Of a stretch of DNA of 64,000 nucleotides, positions 49,218-53,224 are shown piece after piece. This DNA is from Macrostomum lignano (taxonomy: Eukaryota). The notes under the pieces were generated by a model. It searched no databases. It was not told the DNA's origin and worked only from the letters and a program-made list of their open reading frames with translations. The translations under genes and the position numbers were made by a program. The stretch is taken from positions 434,001 through 498,000 of the forward strand of contig NIVC01000251.1 of the NCBI GenBank assembly GCA_002269645.1, in the 5' to 3' direction. Each line of letters opens with the position of its first letter. Position 1 is the first letter of the stretch.

Positions 49218-52200
49218 TTAGCAGCAGCAGCACATGCCTCCCGTTGGCTGAGGTCGCCACACCATCACCCGTTTGTTCTGCTGCGGCGTGACTAGCACAG
49301 CCATGCTGCCCTCCTGATAATTCACATCCTTGTAGCTCAGCTCCGGGTTCACCTGGCACTGCCAGCTCTTGTCCAGCTTCCTATCCAGCTCGTGCATCAT
49401 CTGCCGCTCGAACTCGCTAGCGTTCTTGTCGTTGCCGGAGCGCCTCCACTTGGAACCAACCTGAGCTAGCAGGCGCTTGACTTCATCCAAATCCTTCGGC
49501 TCCATGTCTGAGAACTCTACGCTGATCAACCTGACAGGAGTGGGTGGCGCTTCTTTATTTGAGTATCTGTTTTGAGCTGCTCAAATCAATAATTTTGTTT
49601 AAATATAGCACCTATAGCGCCAAAATGAGTGCCTGTGGCGCTTAAATGAGTGCCTGCGGCGCTAAAATGAGTTCCTGCGGCGCTAAAATGAGTGCCTGCG
49701 GCGCTAAAATGAGTGCCTGCGGCGCTAAAATGAGTTCCTGCGGCGCTAAAATGAGTGCCTGCGGCGCTAAAGGGAGTGCCTGCGGCGCTAAAATGAGTTC
49801 CTGCGGCGCTAAAATGAGTGCCTGCGGCGCTAAAATGAGTGCCTGCGGCGCTAAAATGAGTTCCTGCGGCGCTAAAATGAGTGCCTGCGGAGCTAAAATG
49901 AGTGCCTGCGGCGCTAAAATGAGTGCCTGCGGCTCCAAAATGAGTGTCTGCGGCGCTAAAATGAGTGCCTTCGGTGCTAAAATGAGTGTCTGCGGCGCTA
50001 AAATGAGTTCCTGCGGCGCTAAAATGAGTGCCTGCGGAGCTAAAATGAGTGCCTGCGGCGCTAAAATGAGTGTCTGCGGCGCTAAAATGAGTGCCTTCGG
50101 TGCTAAAATGAGTGTCTGCGGTGCTAAAATGAGTGTCTGCGGCGCTAAAATGAGTGTCTTCGGCGCTTAAATGAGTGCTTGCGGCGCTAAAATGAGTGCC
50201 TGCGGCGCTAAAATGAGTGCCTGCGGCGCTAAAATGAGTTCCTGCGGCGCTAAAATGAGTGCCTGCGGCGCTAAAATGAGTGCCTGCGGAGCTAAAATGA
50301 GTGCCTGCGGCGCTAAAATGAGTGTCTGCGGCGCTAAAATGAGTGCCTGCGGCTCCAAAATGAGTGTCTGCGGCGCTAAAATGAGTGCCTTCGGTGCTAA
50401 AATGAGTGTCTGCGGCGCTTAAATGAGTGCTTGCGGCGCTAAAATGAGTGCCTGCGGCGCTAAAATGAGTGCCTGCGGCGCTAGAATGAGTGCCTGCGGC
50501 GCTAAAATGAGTGCCTGCGGCGCTAAAATGAGTGCCTGCGGCGCTAAAATGAGTGTCTGCGGCGCTAGAATGAGTCTCTGCGGCGCTAAAATGAGTGTCT
50601 GCGGCGCTAAAATGAGTTCCTGCGGCGCTAAAATGAGTGCCTGCGGTGCCAAAATGAGTGTCTGCGGCGCTAAAATGAGTGCCTGCGGCGCTAAAATGAG
50701 TGTCTGCGGCGCTAAAATGAGTTCCTGCGGCGCTAAAATGAGTGCCTGCGGCGCTAAAATGAGTGCCTGCGGCGCTAAAATGAGTGCCTGCGGTGCTAAA
50801 ATGAGTGCCTGCGGCGCTAAAATGAGTGTTTGTGGCGCTAAAATGAGTGCCTGCGGCGCTAAAATGAGTGTCTGCGGCGCTAAAATGAGTGTCTGCGGCG
50901 CTAAAATGAGTGCCTGCGGCGCTAAAATGAGTGTCTGCGGCGCTACGTATGCAGGCACAGCGGCCTGTCCTGACTCTCTAATCATGAAGTGCAAACTTTT
51001 TCAAAGTCTTGTTTAAACTCTGATGCTTTCTTGATAGTTATCTGCTCAAACTCACGAAGGATCATCGTCGCCTAATTCAATTGCGACCTCTTCGGGTGAA
51101 GCTTTCGAACTAAAATCGACAAAAAAAGGATCATAAAACATCAATTGTCAAGGTGAGATTATTCATCTTGAAAACAGACTGCATATAGTAATATTCCTTA
51201 CTTCACTCCTGCTCGAGCCTTTGCGGAAGTTTGCGGTCTGAAATTTTGATCGATTTTAAGATTACGTTCGTAGAGTCGATAATATTCTGAGACTCAGCTA
51301 GGTAATTACCGGCAACTGTTTTCACTTACTGAATAACTTCGTCTTCTACTTCTTCCGGTTCTTCTTTCGGTTTAGGTGGCTCGGTTCTCACTTTCCTGGC
51401 CTGTTGAGGTCTAAATATGGAAATAAATTCAACTTAGTCTAGGCCTGATCAAATTGTAAACTAAATGAGGACTCACTCAATGTTCTCCTTGACCTCGTCC
51501 TGTTCAACGGGTTTGCTGAAAACAAAAACAAAAAAAAGTGTTTGTTTGTTTTAATTGTTACATCACAATAATCTTTATTCCTTCATTCTGGATTCAAACC
51601 TAGGGGTTGCTCGAGGAAGTCGACTCGTGCGTCTAAAAGGTAAGTGGTAGAGTTTGATTATTTCTTTAAAAAAATAACTTTATAAGATGACGGGGTAACA
51701 GACCTGTTAGCTCTGTCGGAGTCTGCAGGCTTTTGCTGTTGCTGTTGCTGGCGCTGGGCCACCGTCTTGCGTGCCTCCCGACTATAAAACGCGAAAAGAG
51801 GCAATCCTAATTTTCTAAACGAAAAGCTTTATGGTTATTAATAGAGCCATAAGAAAGGCATGACACGAAGGGAATGGGATATTAGAAAATTAGCAAAGGT
51901 AGGATTAAAGGCGATCTCAAATCTCAAATCGATCACAAAGGAAGTCCAAAGTGATCAGTACCCAAAAGTGGGTAAGCGCAGGGCCAAATGAGTCAAAGAA
52001 GCCACAGGCGGCGTCTACTCATATATGGAAAACGAGAGCTGCATAAGTTGCGCTGAAAAACACGTCCCATGCGCGTGACTCGTGATGATCACGACCTTGA
52101 ACTGCCCTTTTACCGGCGTTGCCAAGCAGCCGAGTGACGTCACCTGTCTAGCCATACTGTTATTGGCAACTTACATGAGGTTAGTGCGCGGCACTCAAAA

Positions 52201-53224
52201 GACCTGGGAGAAATGCGGAATGACTTCCGAATAAAAGAATGGAGGTTGAGATGGTGGGAAAGGGAATGAATGGGGTTGACACAGGGATGAGTCATCTCAT
52301 CTCACAGACAGACAGACAGACAGACAGACAGACATAGACAGACATAGACAGACAGATAGACAGACAGACAGACAGACAGACAGACAGACAGACAGACAGA
52401 CAGACAGACAGACAGACAGACAGACAGACAGACAGACAGACAGACAGACAGACAGACAGACAGACAGTCTACTTACAGCTTGTCTTCATAAATTTTTTCA
52501 TCCAACCCGAGAGTCTCGCAAAACTCGGAGAACGTGAACTTGCCGTCCTTATTCGAGTCAAACAATCGAAGCCATTTCTGCAAAAAGAACAGTGACGCTG
52601 CAATATCAGGTTGCAACAATTAGTTTGCCAACGTCGAAAAATTCAAAATACACCCTCTGTTAGGCTGTTACGTTGTTTTGAAACTTTTTTCGACCGATCG
52701 GAGGAGTTATGGTATATACTATTGACAACATAGTTGGAAAGTAACATCCATGGTTTCTACAACAGAAACATCCCCTCTACAATTCAGAAACACCACCTCT
52801 ACAATCCTGAAACACCACCTCTACAATCCTGAAACACCACCTCTACAATCCTGAAACACCACCTCTACAATCCTGAAACACCACCTCTACAATCCTGAAA
52901 CACCACCTCTACAATCCTGAAACACCACCTCTACAATCCTGAAACACCACCTCTACAATCCTGAAACACCACCTCTACAATCCTGAAACATCACCTCTAC
53001 AATCCAGAAACATGACCTCTACAATCCTGAAACATCACCTCTACAATCCAGAAACATCACCTCTACAACAGAAAATAGGCGTATACATTTATACAAAATT
53101 TTCAACTCACATTTGTAAACGCTTTCTCATATTTCATTGAGGCAGCGTAATTATCCAAATCAGCCTCGTGAATAACCAGATCGTGGTCGGTGTCCACGGC
53201 GGCGAAAACGTTGAGAAATTCCAT
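49218..53224 (-). CDS. Tegument-allergen-like (TAL) protein: two EF-hands + long linker + dynein-light-chain-like domain + C-terminal CCCC, 9 exons, 282 aa
   Basis: Exons (minus) 53224-53111, 52577-52477, 51781-51704, 51632-51600, 51515-51477, 51410-51330, 51237-51202, 51109-51056 and 49530-49218, all GT-AG, total 849 nt in frame. EF loops DTDHDLVIHEAD and DSNKDGKFTFSE followed by FCETLGL; DLC-like ISVEFSDM...ELDRKLDKSWQCQV...RVMVWR. An acceptor AG lies 2 nt before the ATG, so an upstream exon or leader is possible. Confidence 0.88.
49615..50945. repeat. 21-bp minisatellite GCCTGCGGCGCTAAAATGAGT in the last TAL intron
   Basis: 7-aa periodicity MSACGAK; variant units recur at 252 and 420 bp. 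Confidence 0.96.
52305..52467. repeat. (GACA)n microsatellite next to the TAL exon 2 donor
   Basis: Direct inspection. Confidence 0.96.
52760..53072. repeat. 22-bp minisatellite ACACCACCTCTACAATCCTGAA in TAL intron 1
   Basis: Direct inspection. Confidence 0.94.

Follow-up and report, generated by a model that had tools for sequence, protein, structure and literature searches.

TAL/CaBP proteins (tegument-allergen-like proteins, TALs) are leading targets of IgE and are considered vaccine and drug candidates in schistosomes and liver flukes. The family has been described as 'found only in parasitic flatworms' (PMC4300400), 'found only in trematodes' (PMC12347358, 2025), 'specific to parasitic flatworms' (bioRxiv 10.64898/2026.04.22.720116, April 2026) and 'unique to the platyhelminths' (PMC10212073). 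Papers up to 2025–2026 justify TALs as targets partly by the claimed specificity for trematodes or parasitic flatworms (PMC4300400; PMC12347358; bioRxiv 10.64898/2026.04.22.720116). FhCaBP2 and FhCaBP4 form dimers through their dynein light chain (DLC) domain and bind calcium through loop 2 only (PMC12347358). A related gene was analysed in a stretch of 64,000 nucleotides from the free-living flatworm Macrostomum lignano (contig NIVC01000251.1, positions 434,001 to 498,000; hereafter the window). The gene occupies 49218..53224 of the window on the minus strand and encodes a TAL-type EF-hand pair, a long linker and a divergent DLC-fold domain. By its sequence, the window protein is not a TAL of the Sm22.6 type but a long-linker member of a branch with a cysteine cluster at the C-terminus (Cys-tail branch), which stands beside the numbered TALs.

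The strongest evidence for the age of the family lies outside the window. The M. lignano gene BOX15_Mlig005207g1 (P0014, PAA61473.1) on contig NIVC01002030.1 has three exons and encodes 177 amino acids without a Cys tail. The Pfam model Dynein_light scores 78.5 bits. The protein aligns over its full length with FhCaBP4 (2.7e-18). In a database of proteome size, it matches 206-amino-acid schistosome proteins annotated as 'Tegument antigen', including that of S. japonicum, with E-values of 7e-25 to 9e-25 and the 'Tegument antigen' of Paragonimus with 5e-22. P0014 is, as far as sequences define the family, a classical TAL by every published criterion. It shares 44% identical amino acids with the window protein over residues 1–63 and the same EF-hand signature. 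Both genes have the first intron at the same position (after residue 38), an exon 1 of 114 nucleotides and a DLC domain within one terminal exon. The presence of both genes in free-living M. lignano implies that the EF-hand and DLC family existed before the Neodermata. On sequence homology, the TAL family thus predates the Neodermata and is a flatworm invention, not an adaptation to parasitism. The first-pass annotation of the DNA had already proposed an origin before the neodermis, and the proposal holds. Consequently, the literature claim of a restriction to parasites is contradicted: M. lignano hosts the window protein as well as the classical TAL P0014, and a TAL criterion of occurrence in parasitic flatworms only does not apply to them. 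No paper on TALs in a free-living flatworm was found, including Macrostomum, Schmidtea and planarians; an earlier mention is possible, for example in the 2006 comparison by Vichasri-Grams et al. Mlig017693, the locus name of the window gene, was not found in the searchable literature.

The EF-hand half of the window protein is of the TAL type. Exon 1 (53224-53111, 114 nucleotides) encodes Met1-Asn38 with the helix-loop-helix of EF-hand 1. Its loop DTDHDLVIHEAD (53159..53194) is non-canonical, with leucine in position 6 and aspartate in position 12. Exon 2 (52577-52477) encodes KWLRLFD...LGLDEKIYEDK, that is, EF-hand 2 with the TAL signature W..LFD......EFC..LGL, and was aligned to CsTegu20.8 and FhCaBP4. 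The loop DSNKDGKFTFSE (52524..52559) has the canonical D1, N3, D5, G6 and E12 and is the predicted calcium site. Among 177,635 PDB sequences, the two best matches of the protein are the Clonorchis 'Tegumental protein 20.8 kDa' (5x2e, 1.3e-8) and the Fasciola CaBP4 (9voa, 1.6e-7); generic calcium sensors rank five orders of magnitude behind. A Foldseek search with the AlphaFold2 model matched the EF-hands of CsTAL3 (5x2e) with a template modelling (TM) score of 0.83. In Pfam, EF-hand_7 scored 30.9 bits (cut-off 30, E 3.4e-7). This score and the TAL proteins as best PDB matches place the window protein within the family by the EF-hand criterion of Fitzsimmons et al. 2012 and PLoS Pathog 2023.

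The C-terminal half is divergent. The LC8/DLC-fold domain, Leu180-Arg271 (49254..49529), lies wholly in exon 9 (49530-49218), which in the splice model encodes the entire C-terminal domain and the tail. Dynein_light scored 15.8 bits (E 0.019), below the cut-off of 29.1; hence HMMER recognised the EF-hand part of the 282-residue protein and not the DLC part. The precomputed Pfam list of the public protein contains EF-hand families only, and the annotated DLC domain that is used to define TALs is missing at this score. A search with the C-terminal domain as single sequence in phmmer gave no significant match in the PDB; the top match was the DLC domain of FhCaBP2 with an E-value of 0.92. Despite the weak single-sequence signal, the homology to DLC domains is considered secure from profiles and models because it is supported by four independent lines: relatives of the P0004 type, profile alignments, PDB searches with a subgroup-only profile and structure models.

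P0004, a metatranscript protein of 233 amino acids, is the closest relative outside M. lignano and aligns end-to-end with the 241-amino-acid isoform of the window protein (phmmer, 1.2e-22). Its Dynein_light score is 31.1 bits and thus above the cut-off; P0006 and P0007 have 26.9 and 20.6 bits. In hhalign, the C-terminal profile of the Macrostomum group matched 28 classical TAL DLC domains with a probability of 98.0% (E 2e-13, 82 columns), and sensitive methods therefore attest the C-terminal homology to the DLC-like domain of TALs. A second profile was made of Cys-tail C-termini without any classical TAL. With PDB matches taken at E<=10, 40 of its 41 matches were LC8-type or TAL DLC chains: LC10 was best (5.1e-5), followed by FhCaBP4 (1.2e-3), FhCaBP2 (4-5e-3) and CsTegu20.8 (0.14).

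The structure predictions agree with these alignments. AlphaFold2 with a family alignment of 43 sequences, including canonical DLC domains, modelled both domains with a predicted local distance difference test (pLDDT) above 90 and the C-terminal domain in the order beta-alpha-alpha-beta-beta-beta. With this model, Foldseek found full-length FhCaBP4 first (E 2.6e-9) and dozens of LC8 chains with TM 0.80-0.88, root-mean-square deviations of 1.6-1.8 A and 12-17% identity. A rerun with 15 Cys-tail proteins only yielded the same topology with pLDDT 70-90, and LC8 and FhCaBP2 chains were the sole matches beside EF-hand proteins. The TM decreased to ~0.6 because the loop equivalent to the LC8 strand beta3 was not modelled with the subgroup-only alignment. 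Thus, the LC8 fold was predicted from both alignments. In a comparison with DYNLL1, the core motif DM...LD..(F/Y)G..W is kept. The linker begins with a long helix and has a pLDDT below 50 through most of its remaining length; it is predicted to be disordered. The tail also has a pLDDT below 50.

To collect relatives, the 241-amino-acid isoform P0002 was compared exhaustively by phmmer with 1.84 billion representatives, which yielded 80 proteins at E<=1e-3. All named matches are from flatworms, and many carry the label 'tegument antigen' or 'tegumental protein'. Among the hosts are Schistosoma, Trichobilharzia, Paragonimus, Echinostoma, Dicrocoelium, Calicophoron, Mesocestoides, Spirometra, Schistocephalus, Taenia, the monogenean Cichlidogyrus and M. 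lignano. Among the matches, none could be named as a planarian homologue. A word-indexed search, the index of which does not reach classical TALs, found M. lignano copies only with the 282-amino-acid query, even at E<=10, and schistosomatid and monogenean members only with the subgroup profile.

Of the 15 subgroup members, which come from Macrostomum, Monogenea, Cestoda and Trematoda, 14 carry a cluster of cysteines at their C-terminal end. The tails are GGMCCCC in the window protein, GGCCCC in Schistosoma and Trichobilharzia, CCSCC in Paragonimus, CCAC in Calicophoron, CCACFV in Mesocestoides, CLFCCM in Cichlidogyrus, and CCFCF and CCNFLCI in two metatranscript proteins. Classical TALs are without such a cluster. 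The window protein possesses all features of the subgroup: the EF-hand pair, the degenerate DLC-like domain and a C-terminal cluster of three to four cysteines within the tail PQPTGGMCCCC (49221..49253), a predicted S-acylation site. A neighbour-joining tree was calculated from 175 columns with 200 bootstraps as a distance tree without outgroup. It contains a neodermatan Cys-tail clade (78%), in which the Monogenea branch off before the Cestoda and Trematoda in accordance with the species tree. P0004, P0006 and P0007 cluster with the Macrostomum protein (73%). Both Cys-tail branches are joined at 40%, separate from every classical TAL. The C-terminal domains of the two Cys-tail halves aligned with each other in hhalign with a probability of 92.5% (E 4.8e-7). 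The neodermatan Cys-tail proteins look like orthologues of the window protein, with a weak connection in the tree.

The Cys-tail branch includes proteins of well-studied parasites. The S. mansoni member is a 'putative tegumental protein' of 185 amino acids (XP_018655280, G4VRC7, CCE94318), also labelled 'tegumental antigen', and MS3_00004186 is the member in S. haematobium. The accessions of both and the length of 185 amino acids are absent from the tables of TAL1-14. Pfam calls no DLC domain in the schistosome Cys-tail members. TAL surveys have overlooked the branch because they require an annotated DLC domain, as called by Pfam or InterPro. CCE94318 was detected by three peptides in exosome-like vesicles of adult schistosomes (PMC5818524).

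Environmental sequences extend the set of relatives. P0004, with a Cys tail, and P0006, with a polybasic tail, both have long linkers and originate from one environmental metatranscriptome (JGI sample 3300019149). They are encoded on intronless contigs of ~950 nucleotides with the same order of EF-hand pair, linker and DLC domain. This architecture on intronless transcripts shows that the fusion of EF-hands and DLC domain is real. P0037 is from a 533-nucleotide ENA metagenome scaffold; the environmental sources include SRR3745356. The search also detected flatworm ribosomal proteins eL6 (RPL6) with a TAL-type EF-hand pair at the N-terminus (P0011, P0012, P0024, P0028, P0036, P0043 and P0053). 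Named examples are from Calicophoron daubneyi and Taenia solium. The combination is probably a true fusion and not an artefact of gene models because it is also present on intronless metatranscript contigs of ~1.2 kb. SmTAL10 has no DLC domain and owes its place in the TAL family to the similarity of its EF-hands alone; its orthologue in S. haematobium has 402 amino acids and an isoelectric point of 9. SmTAL10 may be of the EF-hand-eL6 type.

The first-pass annotation regarded the window gene as a TAL-family fusion of the Sm22.6 type with a divergent DLC domain. The fusion of a TAL-type EF-hand pair with a DLC-fold domain and the divergence of the latter were borne out by the searches and models above. 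The Sm22.6 type was not: the DLC score is below threshold, the protein is 282 amino acids long, and in the tree it groups with Cys-tail TAL relatives outside the classical TAL clusters. Published similarity criteria are an E-value below 1e-16 to SmTAL1-3 (2012) or below 1e-10 to SmTALs (2023). As a proxy for SmTAL1-3, BLASTP in a proteome-size database matched the classical Trichobilharzia TAL P0018 with 1.3e-12, the lowest E-value for any classical trematode TAL, and a TAL9-sized S. rodhaini protein with 4.7e-8. By this proxy, the window protein would stay within the limit of 1e-10 for some members and very probably miss that of 1e-16. The signal to the classical trematode TALs comes wholly from the EF-hand part. 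TALs have a size of ~20-25 kDa and a short linker; the window protein has a linker of ~110 amino acids encoded by six mini-exons. M. lignano has a cellular, ciliated epidermis and no tegument.

In the splice model, the open frame consists of nine exons with 282 codons and a stop codon, and all eight introns have GT-AG borders. The reading frame runs from the ATG at 53224 to the stop codon at 49220-49218. The first-pass annotation had given precisely this extent and spliced length, and its EF-hand pattern W..LFD..KDG.....EFC..LGL is encoded in exon 2 as KWLRLFDSNKDGKFTFSEFCETLGL. Exons 3–8 (51056-51781), all on the minus strand, are mini-exons of 78 (exon 3, 51781-51704), 33 (exon 4, 51632-51600), 39 (exon 5, 51515-51477), 81 (exon 6, 51410-51330), 36 (exon 7, 51237-51202) and 54 nucleotides (exon 8, 51109-51056). 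They encode the charged linker, residues ~72-179, which is rich in Q, E, P and K. Tandem Repeats Finder detected a 22-bp repeat with 13.8 copies in intron 1 (52765..53068), an (ACAG)n microsatellite in intron 2 (52304..52467) and a 21-bp minisatellite with 63 copies, which fills the last intron (49617..50945). UniProt A0A1I8HE27 (P0002, 241 amino acids) matches the window exactly except for exons 4, 7 and 8, which are missing in frame. The difference suggests that the linker is alternatively spliced or that two gene models compete. An AG dinucleotide is located two bases upstream of the ATG in the T-rich context ccatttttagATATG (53225-53236). Spliced-leader trans-splicing is common in M. lignano, and the AG could be a candidate acceptor for it. 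A tandem TAL cluster was ruled out, as tblastn detected no second copy of the gene within the 64-kb window.

A second copy of the locus is present in the M. lignano assembly. The window protein is 99% identical to the hypothetical protein BOX15_Mlig017693g2, which is encoded on NIVC01001879.1 (GCA_002269645.1) and adjoins genes for phospholipase B and RPS15. The DNA identity of 96-98% to this contig continues through the same neighbours. The window is therefore interpreted as a further version of this M. lignano locus, from another haplotype, subgenome copy or assembly. These protein and DNA matches also confirm the guess, made from the style of the genome, that the host is the free-living Macrostomum and not a neodermatan. 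A contamination by a parasite was ruled out, since the surrounding 64 kb are M. lignano sequence, and the match to the reference contig extends across the flanking genes. In the coding sequence, 11 of 849 nucleotides differ from the reference, eight of them synonymous and three non-synonymous. This corresponds to 98.7% identity, whereas introns and flanks are ~3-4% divergent (~96-97% identity). Purifying selection seems to act on both copies, with small counts. The minisatellite of the last intron extends over ~1.3 kb (63 copies) in the window and over ~150 bp in NIVC01001879.1; the array length hence varies between copies or haplotypes.

The observations are likely best explained together by an intact, constrained gene of the TAL/CaBP superfamily, belonging to the Cys-tail branch, that codes for a membrane-tethered calcium switch, with a mechanism deduced from sequence and from characterised relatives. 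Calcium would bind to the canonical EF-hand 2 and change the EF-hand pair, with a degenerate EF-hand 1 as in FhCaBP2 and FhCaBP4. The DLC-fold domain may homodimerise, by analogy with FhCaBP4 and CsTAL3. S-acylation of the terminal cysteines would hold the dimer on membranes or vesicles at their cytosolic side, and the long acidic linker would give reach to the EF-hand heads. The cytosolic protein would act as a membrane-attached calcium switch and not as a dynein subunit. Prenylation of the tail as a CaaX box was ruled out because the last four residues differ in their pattern across the subgroup.

Several observations weigh against this explanation. Besides the sub-threshold Dynein_light score, the groove and beta3 residues H55, F62, Y65, T67, H68, Y75 and Y77 of DYNLL1 are not conserved. 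Of W54-H55 and the following residues, only the tryptophan is kept (SWQCQV), and the beta3 region is replaced by NPELSYKDVNYQEG, in DYNLL1 numbering. With these residues replaced and the loop poorly modelled, a dimerisation of the LC8 or FhCaBP4 type is not assured. The neodermatan Cys-tail relatives reverse the pattern of the EF-hands: EF-hand 1 is canonical-like and EF-hand 2 is degenerate, whereas EF-hand 2 is canonical in the window protein. The position of the calcium site is thus not conserved. The Macrostomum and neodermatan Cys-tail branches have a bootstrap support of 40% for their connection in a tree without outgroup. Calcium binding, acylation, localisation and expression of the M. 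lignano protein are predictions. The vesicle proteome of schistosomes offers weak support, by analogy, for membrane anchoring.

Other explanations were considered. A straightforward orthologue of the Sm22.6-type TALs, with a TAL role in the Macrostomum epidermis, would account for the two-domain order, the TAL EF-hand signature, the TAL proteins as best PDB matches and the BLASTP match to the classical Trichobilharzia TAL (1.3e-12), and the admission of SmTAL10 on EF-hand similarity alone sets a precedent. Yet the tree places the protein with the Cys-tail subgroup, the Dynein_light score is below the cut-off, and the 282 amino acids, the linker of ~110 amino acids and the poly-Cys tail are foreign to classical TALs. 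The schistosome Cys-tail members are not listed among TAL1-14, and the separate gene P0014 fits the classical type far better. This orthology is quite unlikely. Similarly poor prospects are seen for a C-terminal domain that functions as a genuine LC8-type light chain or hub, which would recognise TQT-like linear motifs and couple a calcium sensor to dynein or to the axonemes of cilia. The Macrostomum epidermis is ciliated, the fold matches LC8 chains of cytoplasmic and axonemal dyneins, and the axonemal LC10 is the best profile match. An association of SmTAL3 with dynein was reported in work cited in PMC3317908. LC8/DYNLL membership (PF01221) is denied by a Pfam score of half the gathering cut-off, by 12-17% identity to LC8 and by the dimer and groove residues. 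After the conserved tryptophan, the beta3 and groove residues are replaced and a subgroup-specific 'NP' motif is present. With the groove residues lost, binding of TQT motifs or dynein in the manner of LC8 is unlikely.

The terminal cysteines could bind metal or form redox-sensitive disulfides in a soluble protein without a lipid anchor. Cysteine clusters can bind zinc, copper or cadmium, classical TALs are soluble cytosolic proteins, and acylation is a prediction. The location at the very end of the protein, behind a flexible stretch that is basic or rich in glycine, the variable spacing (CCCC, CCSCC, CCAC and CCFCF), which suits acylation better than a fixed metal site, the unstructured tail in the model and the presence of a schistosome subgroup member in membrane vesicles (PMC5818524) make this improbable, although it deserves slightly more credit than the former two explanations. 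An artefact of gene prediction, either a pseudogene or an EF-hand gene misjoined by spurious mini-exons to a DLC gene downstream, could be suspected from the six very short linker exons, the two public models with 282 and 241 amino acids and the large, repeat-filled introns. It is highly improbable: all splice sites are canonical and in frame, both public models hold EF-hands and DLC domain in one frame, and most substitutions relative to the second genomic copy are synonymous. The long-linker homologues P0004 and P0006 have the same architecture on intronless contigs, and in parasites each subgroup relative is one continuous polypeptide; mass spectrometry has detected one of them.

The gene is located in an ordinary context with the same order of neighbours as in the reference contig. 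A phospholipase B gene (44938-46748, minus strand; Pfam 475 bits) lies 2.5 kb downstream. Two intronless copies of RPS15 (Ribosomal_S19) are encoded on the minus strand at 39586-39155 and 36198-35767, both with proteins 100% identical to RPS15 of the reference contig. An open reading frame with a Ribosomal_L1 domain is situated between them (36905-38137, minus strand). The RPS15 pair looks like a local duplication of ~3.4 kb. A piece of a cysteinyl-tRNA synthetase gene is present at 21014-21655 (minus strand). Long open reading frames on both strands at 3884-4893 and 61460-62284 have scattered low-complexity Pfam matches only and are probably read-through of tandem repeats and not genes.

Taken together, the findings allow a broader, tentative scenario, which is possible rather than probable. 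The EF-hand and DLC family would have arisen in the common ancestor of the Rhabditophora before parasitism and the syncytial tegument. The Cys-tail proteins would represent an old calcium switch, anchored to membranes of the surface epithelium, that was inherited into the neodermatan tegument, and the EF-hand pair would be a flatworm-specific module that recombined with the DLC fold and eL6. An epidermal or 'ancestral tegument' role is a proposal; if it is true, M. lignano with its transgenesis and RNA interference would be the first tractable system for the function of TAL-type proteins. As a non-parasitic laboratory animal, it makes localisation, knock-down and structure-function tests practical. 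The analysis also singles out the conserved, unnumbered branch with a predicted lipid anchor, including an S. mansoni protein seen in secreted vesicles. The finding is based on homology and public annotations and could be discovered from public flatworm proteomes; a moderate weight is appropriate.

The closest known systems are the classical TAL/CaBP proteins, namely SmTAL1-14 (e.g., Sm22.6, Sm21.7 and Sm20.8), FhCaBP1-4, CsTAL3/CsTegu20.8 and the OvCaBPs. They share with the window protein the order of EF-hand pair, linker and DLC fold and the signature W..LFD...G.IT...FC..LGL, and they are restricted to flatworms among the named matches. They include its best PDB matches by sequence and fold (5x2e and 9voa). 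FhCaBP2 and FhCaBP4 have, like the window protein, one functional-looking EF loop, loop 2. Classical TALs have ~170-215 amino acids, in contrast to 282 amino acids with a disordered linker of ~110 amino acids from six mini-exons. Further differences of the window protein are the CCCC tail, the DLC domain below the Pfam cut-off and the free-living host without a tegument.

The neodermatan Cys-tail proteins, such as S. mansoni G4VRC7, S. japonicum TNN16918, Paragonimus KAA3677590, Mesocestoides A0A5K3FTN3 and Cichlidogyrus KAL3313361, share the EF-hand pair, the degenerate DLC-like domain (Pfam 13-15 bits or none) and the cysteine cluster. BLASTP with the window protein yielded 1e-13 to 2e-9 in a proteome-size database. 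They are smaller, 174-185 amino acids with a short linker (253 in the monogenean), and lack the 'NP' motif of the branch of Macrostomum and metatranscript proteins. LC8/DYNLL proteins (PF01221) share the beta-alpha-alpha-beta-beta-beta fold and the core motif with the C-terminal domain; at 12-17% identity, the window domain is without the groove and beta3 residues and is fused to an EF-hand pair. The EF-hand pair of the flatworm eL6 proteins is 27-41% identical to the 241-amino-acid isoform P0002 over the matched stretch and 45-55% identical to P0014. In these proteins, the C-terminal partner of the EF-hand pair is the ribosomal protein eL6 and not a DLC fold.

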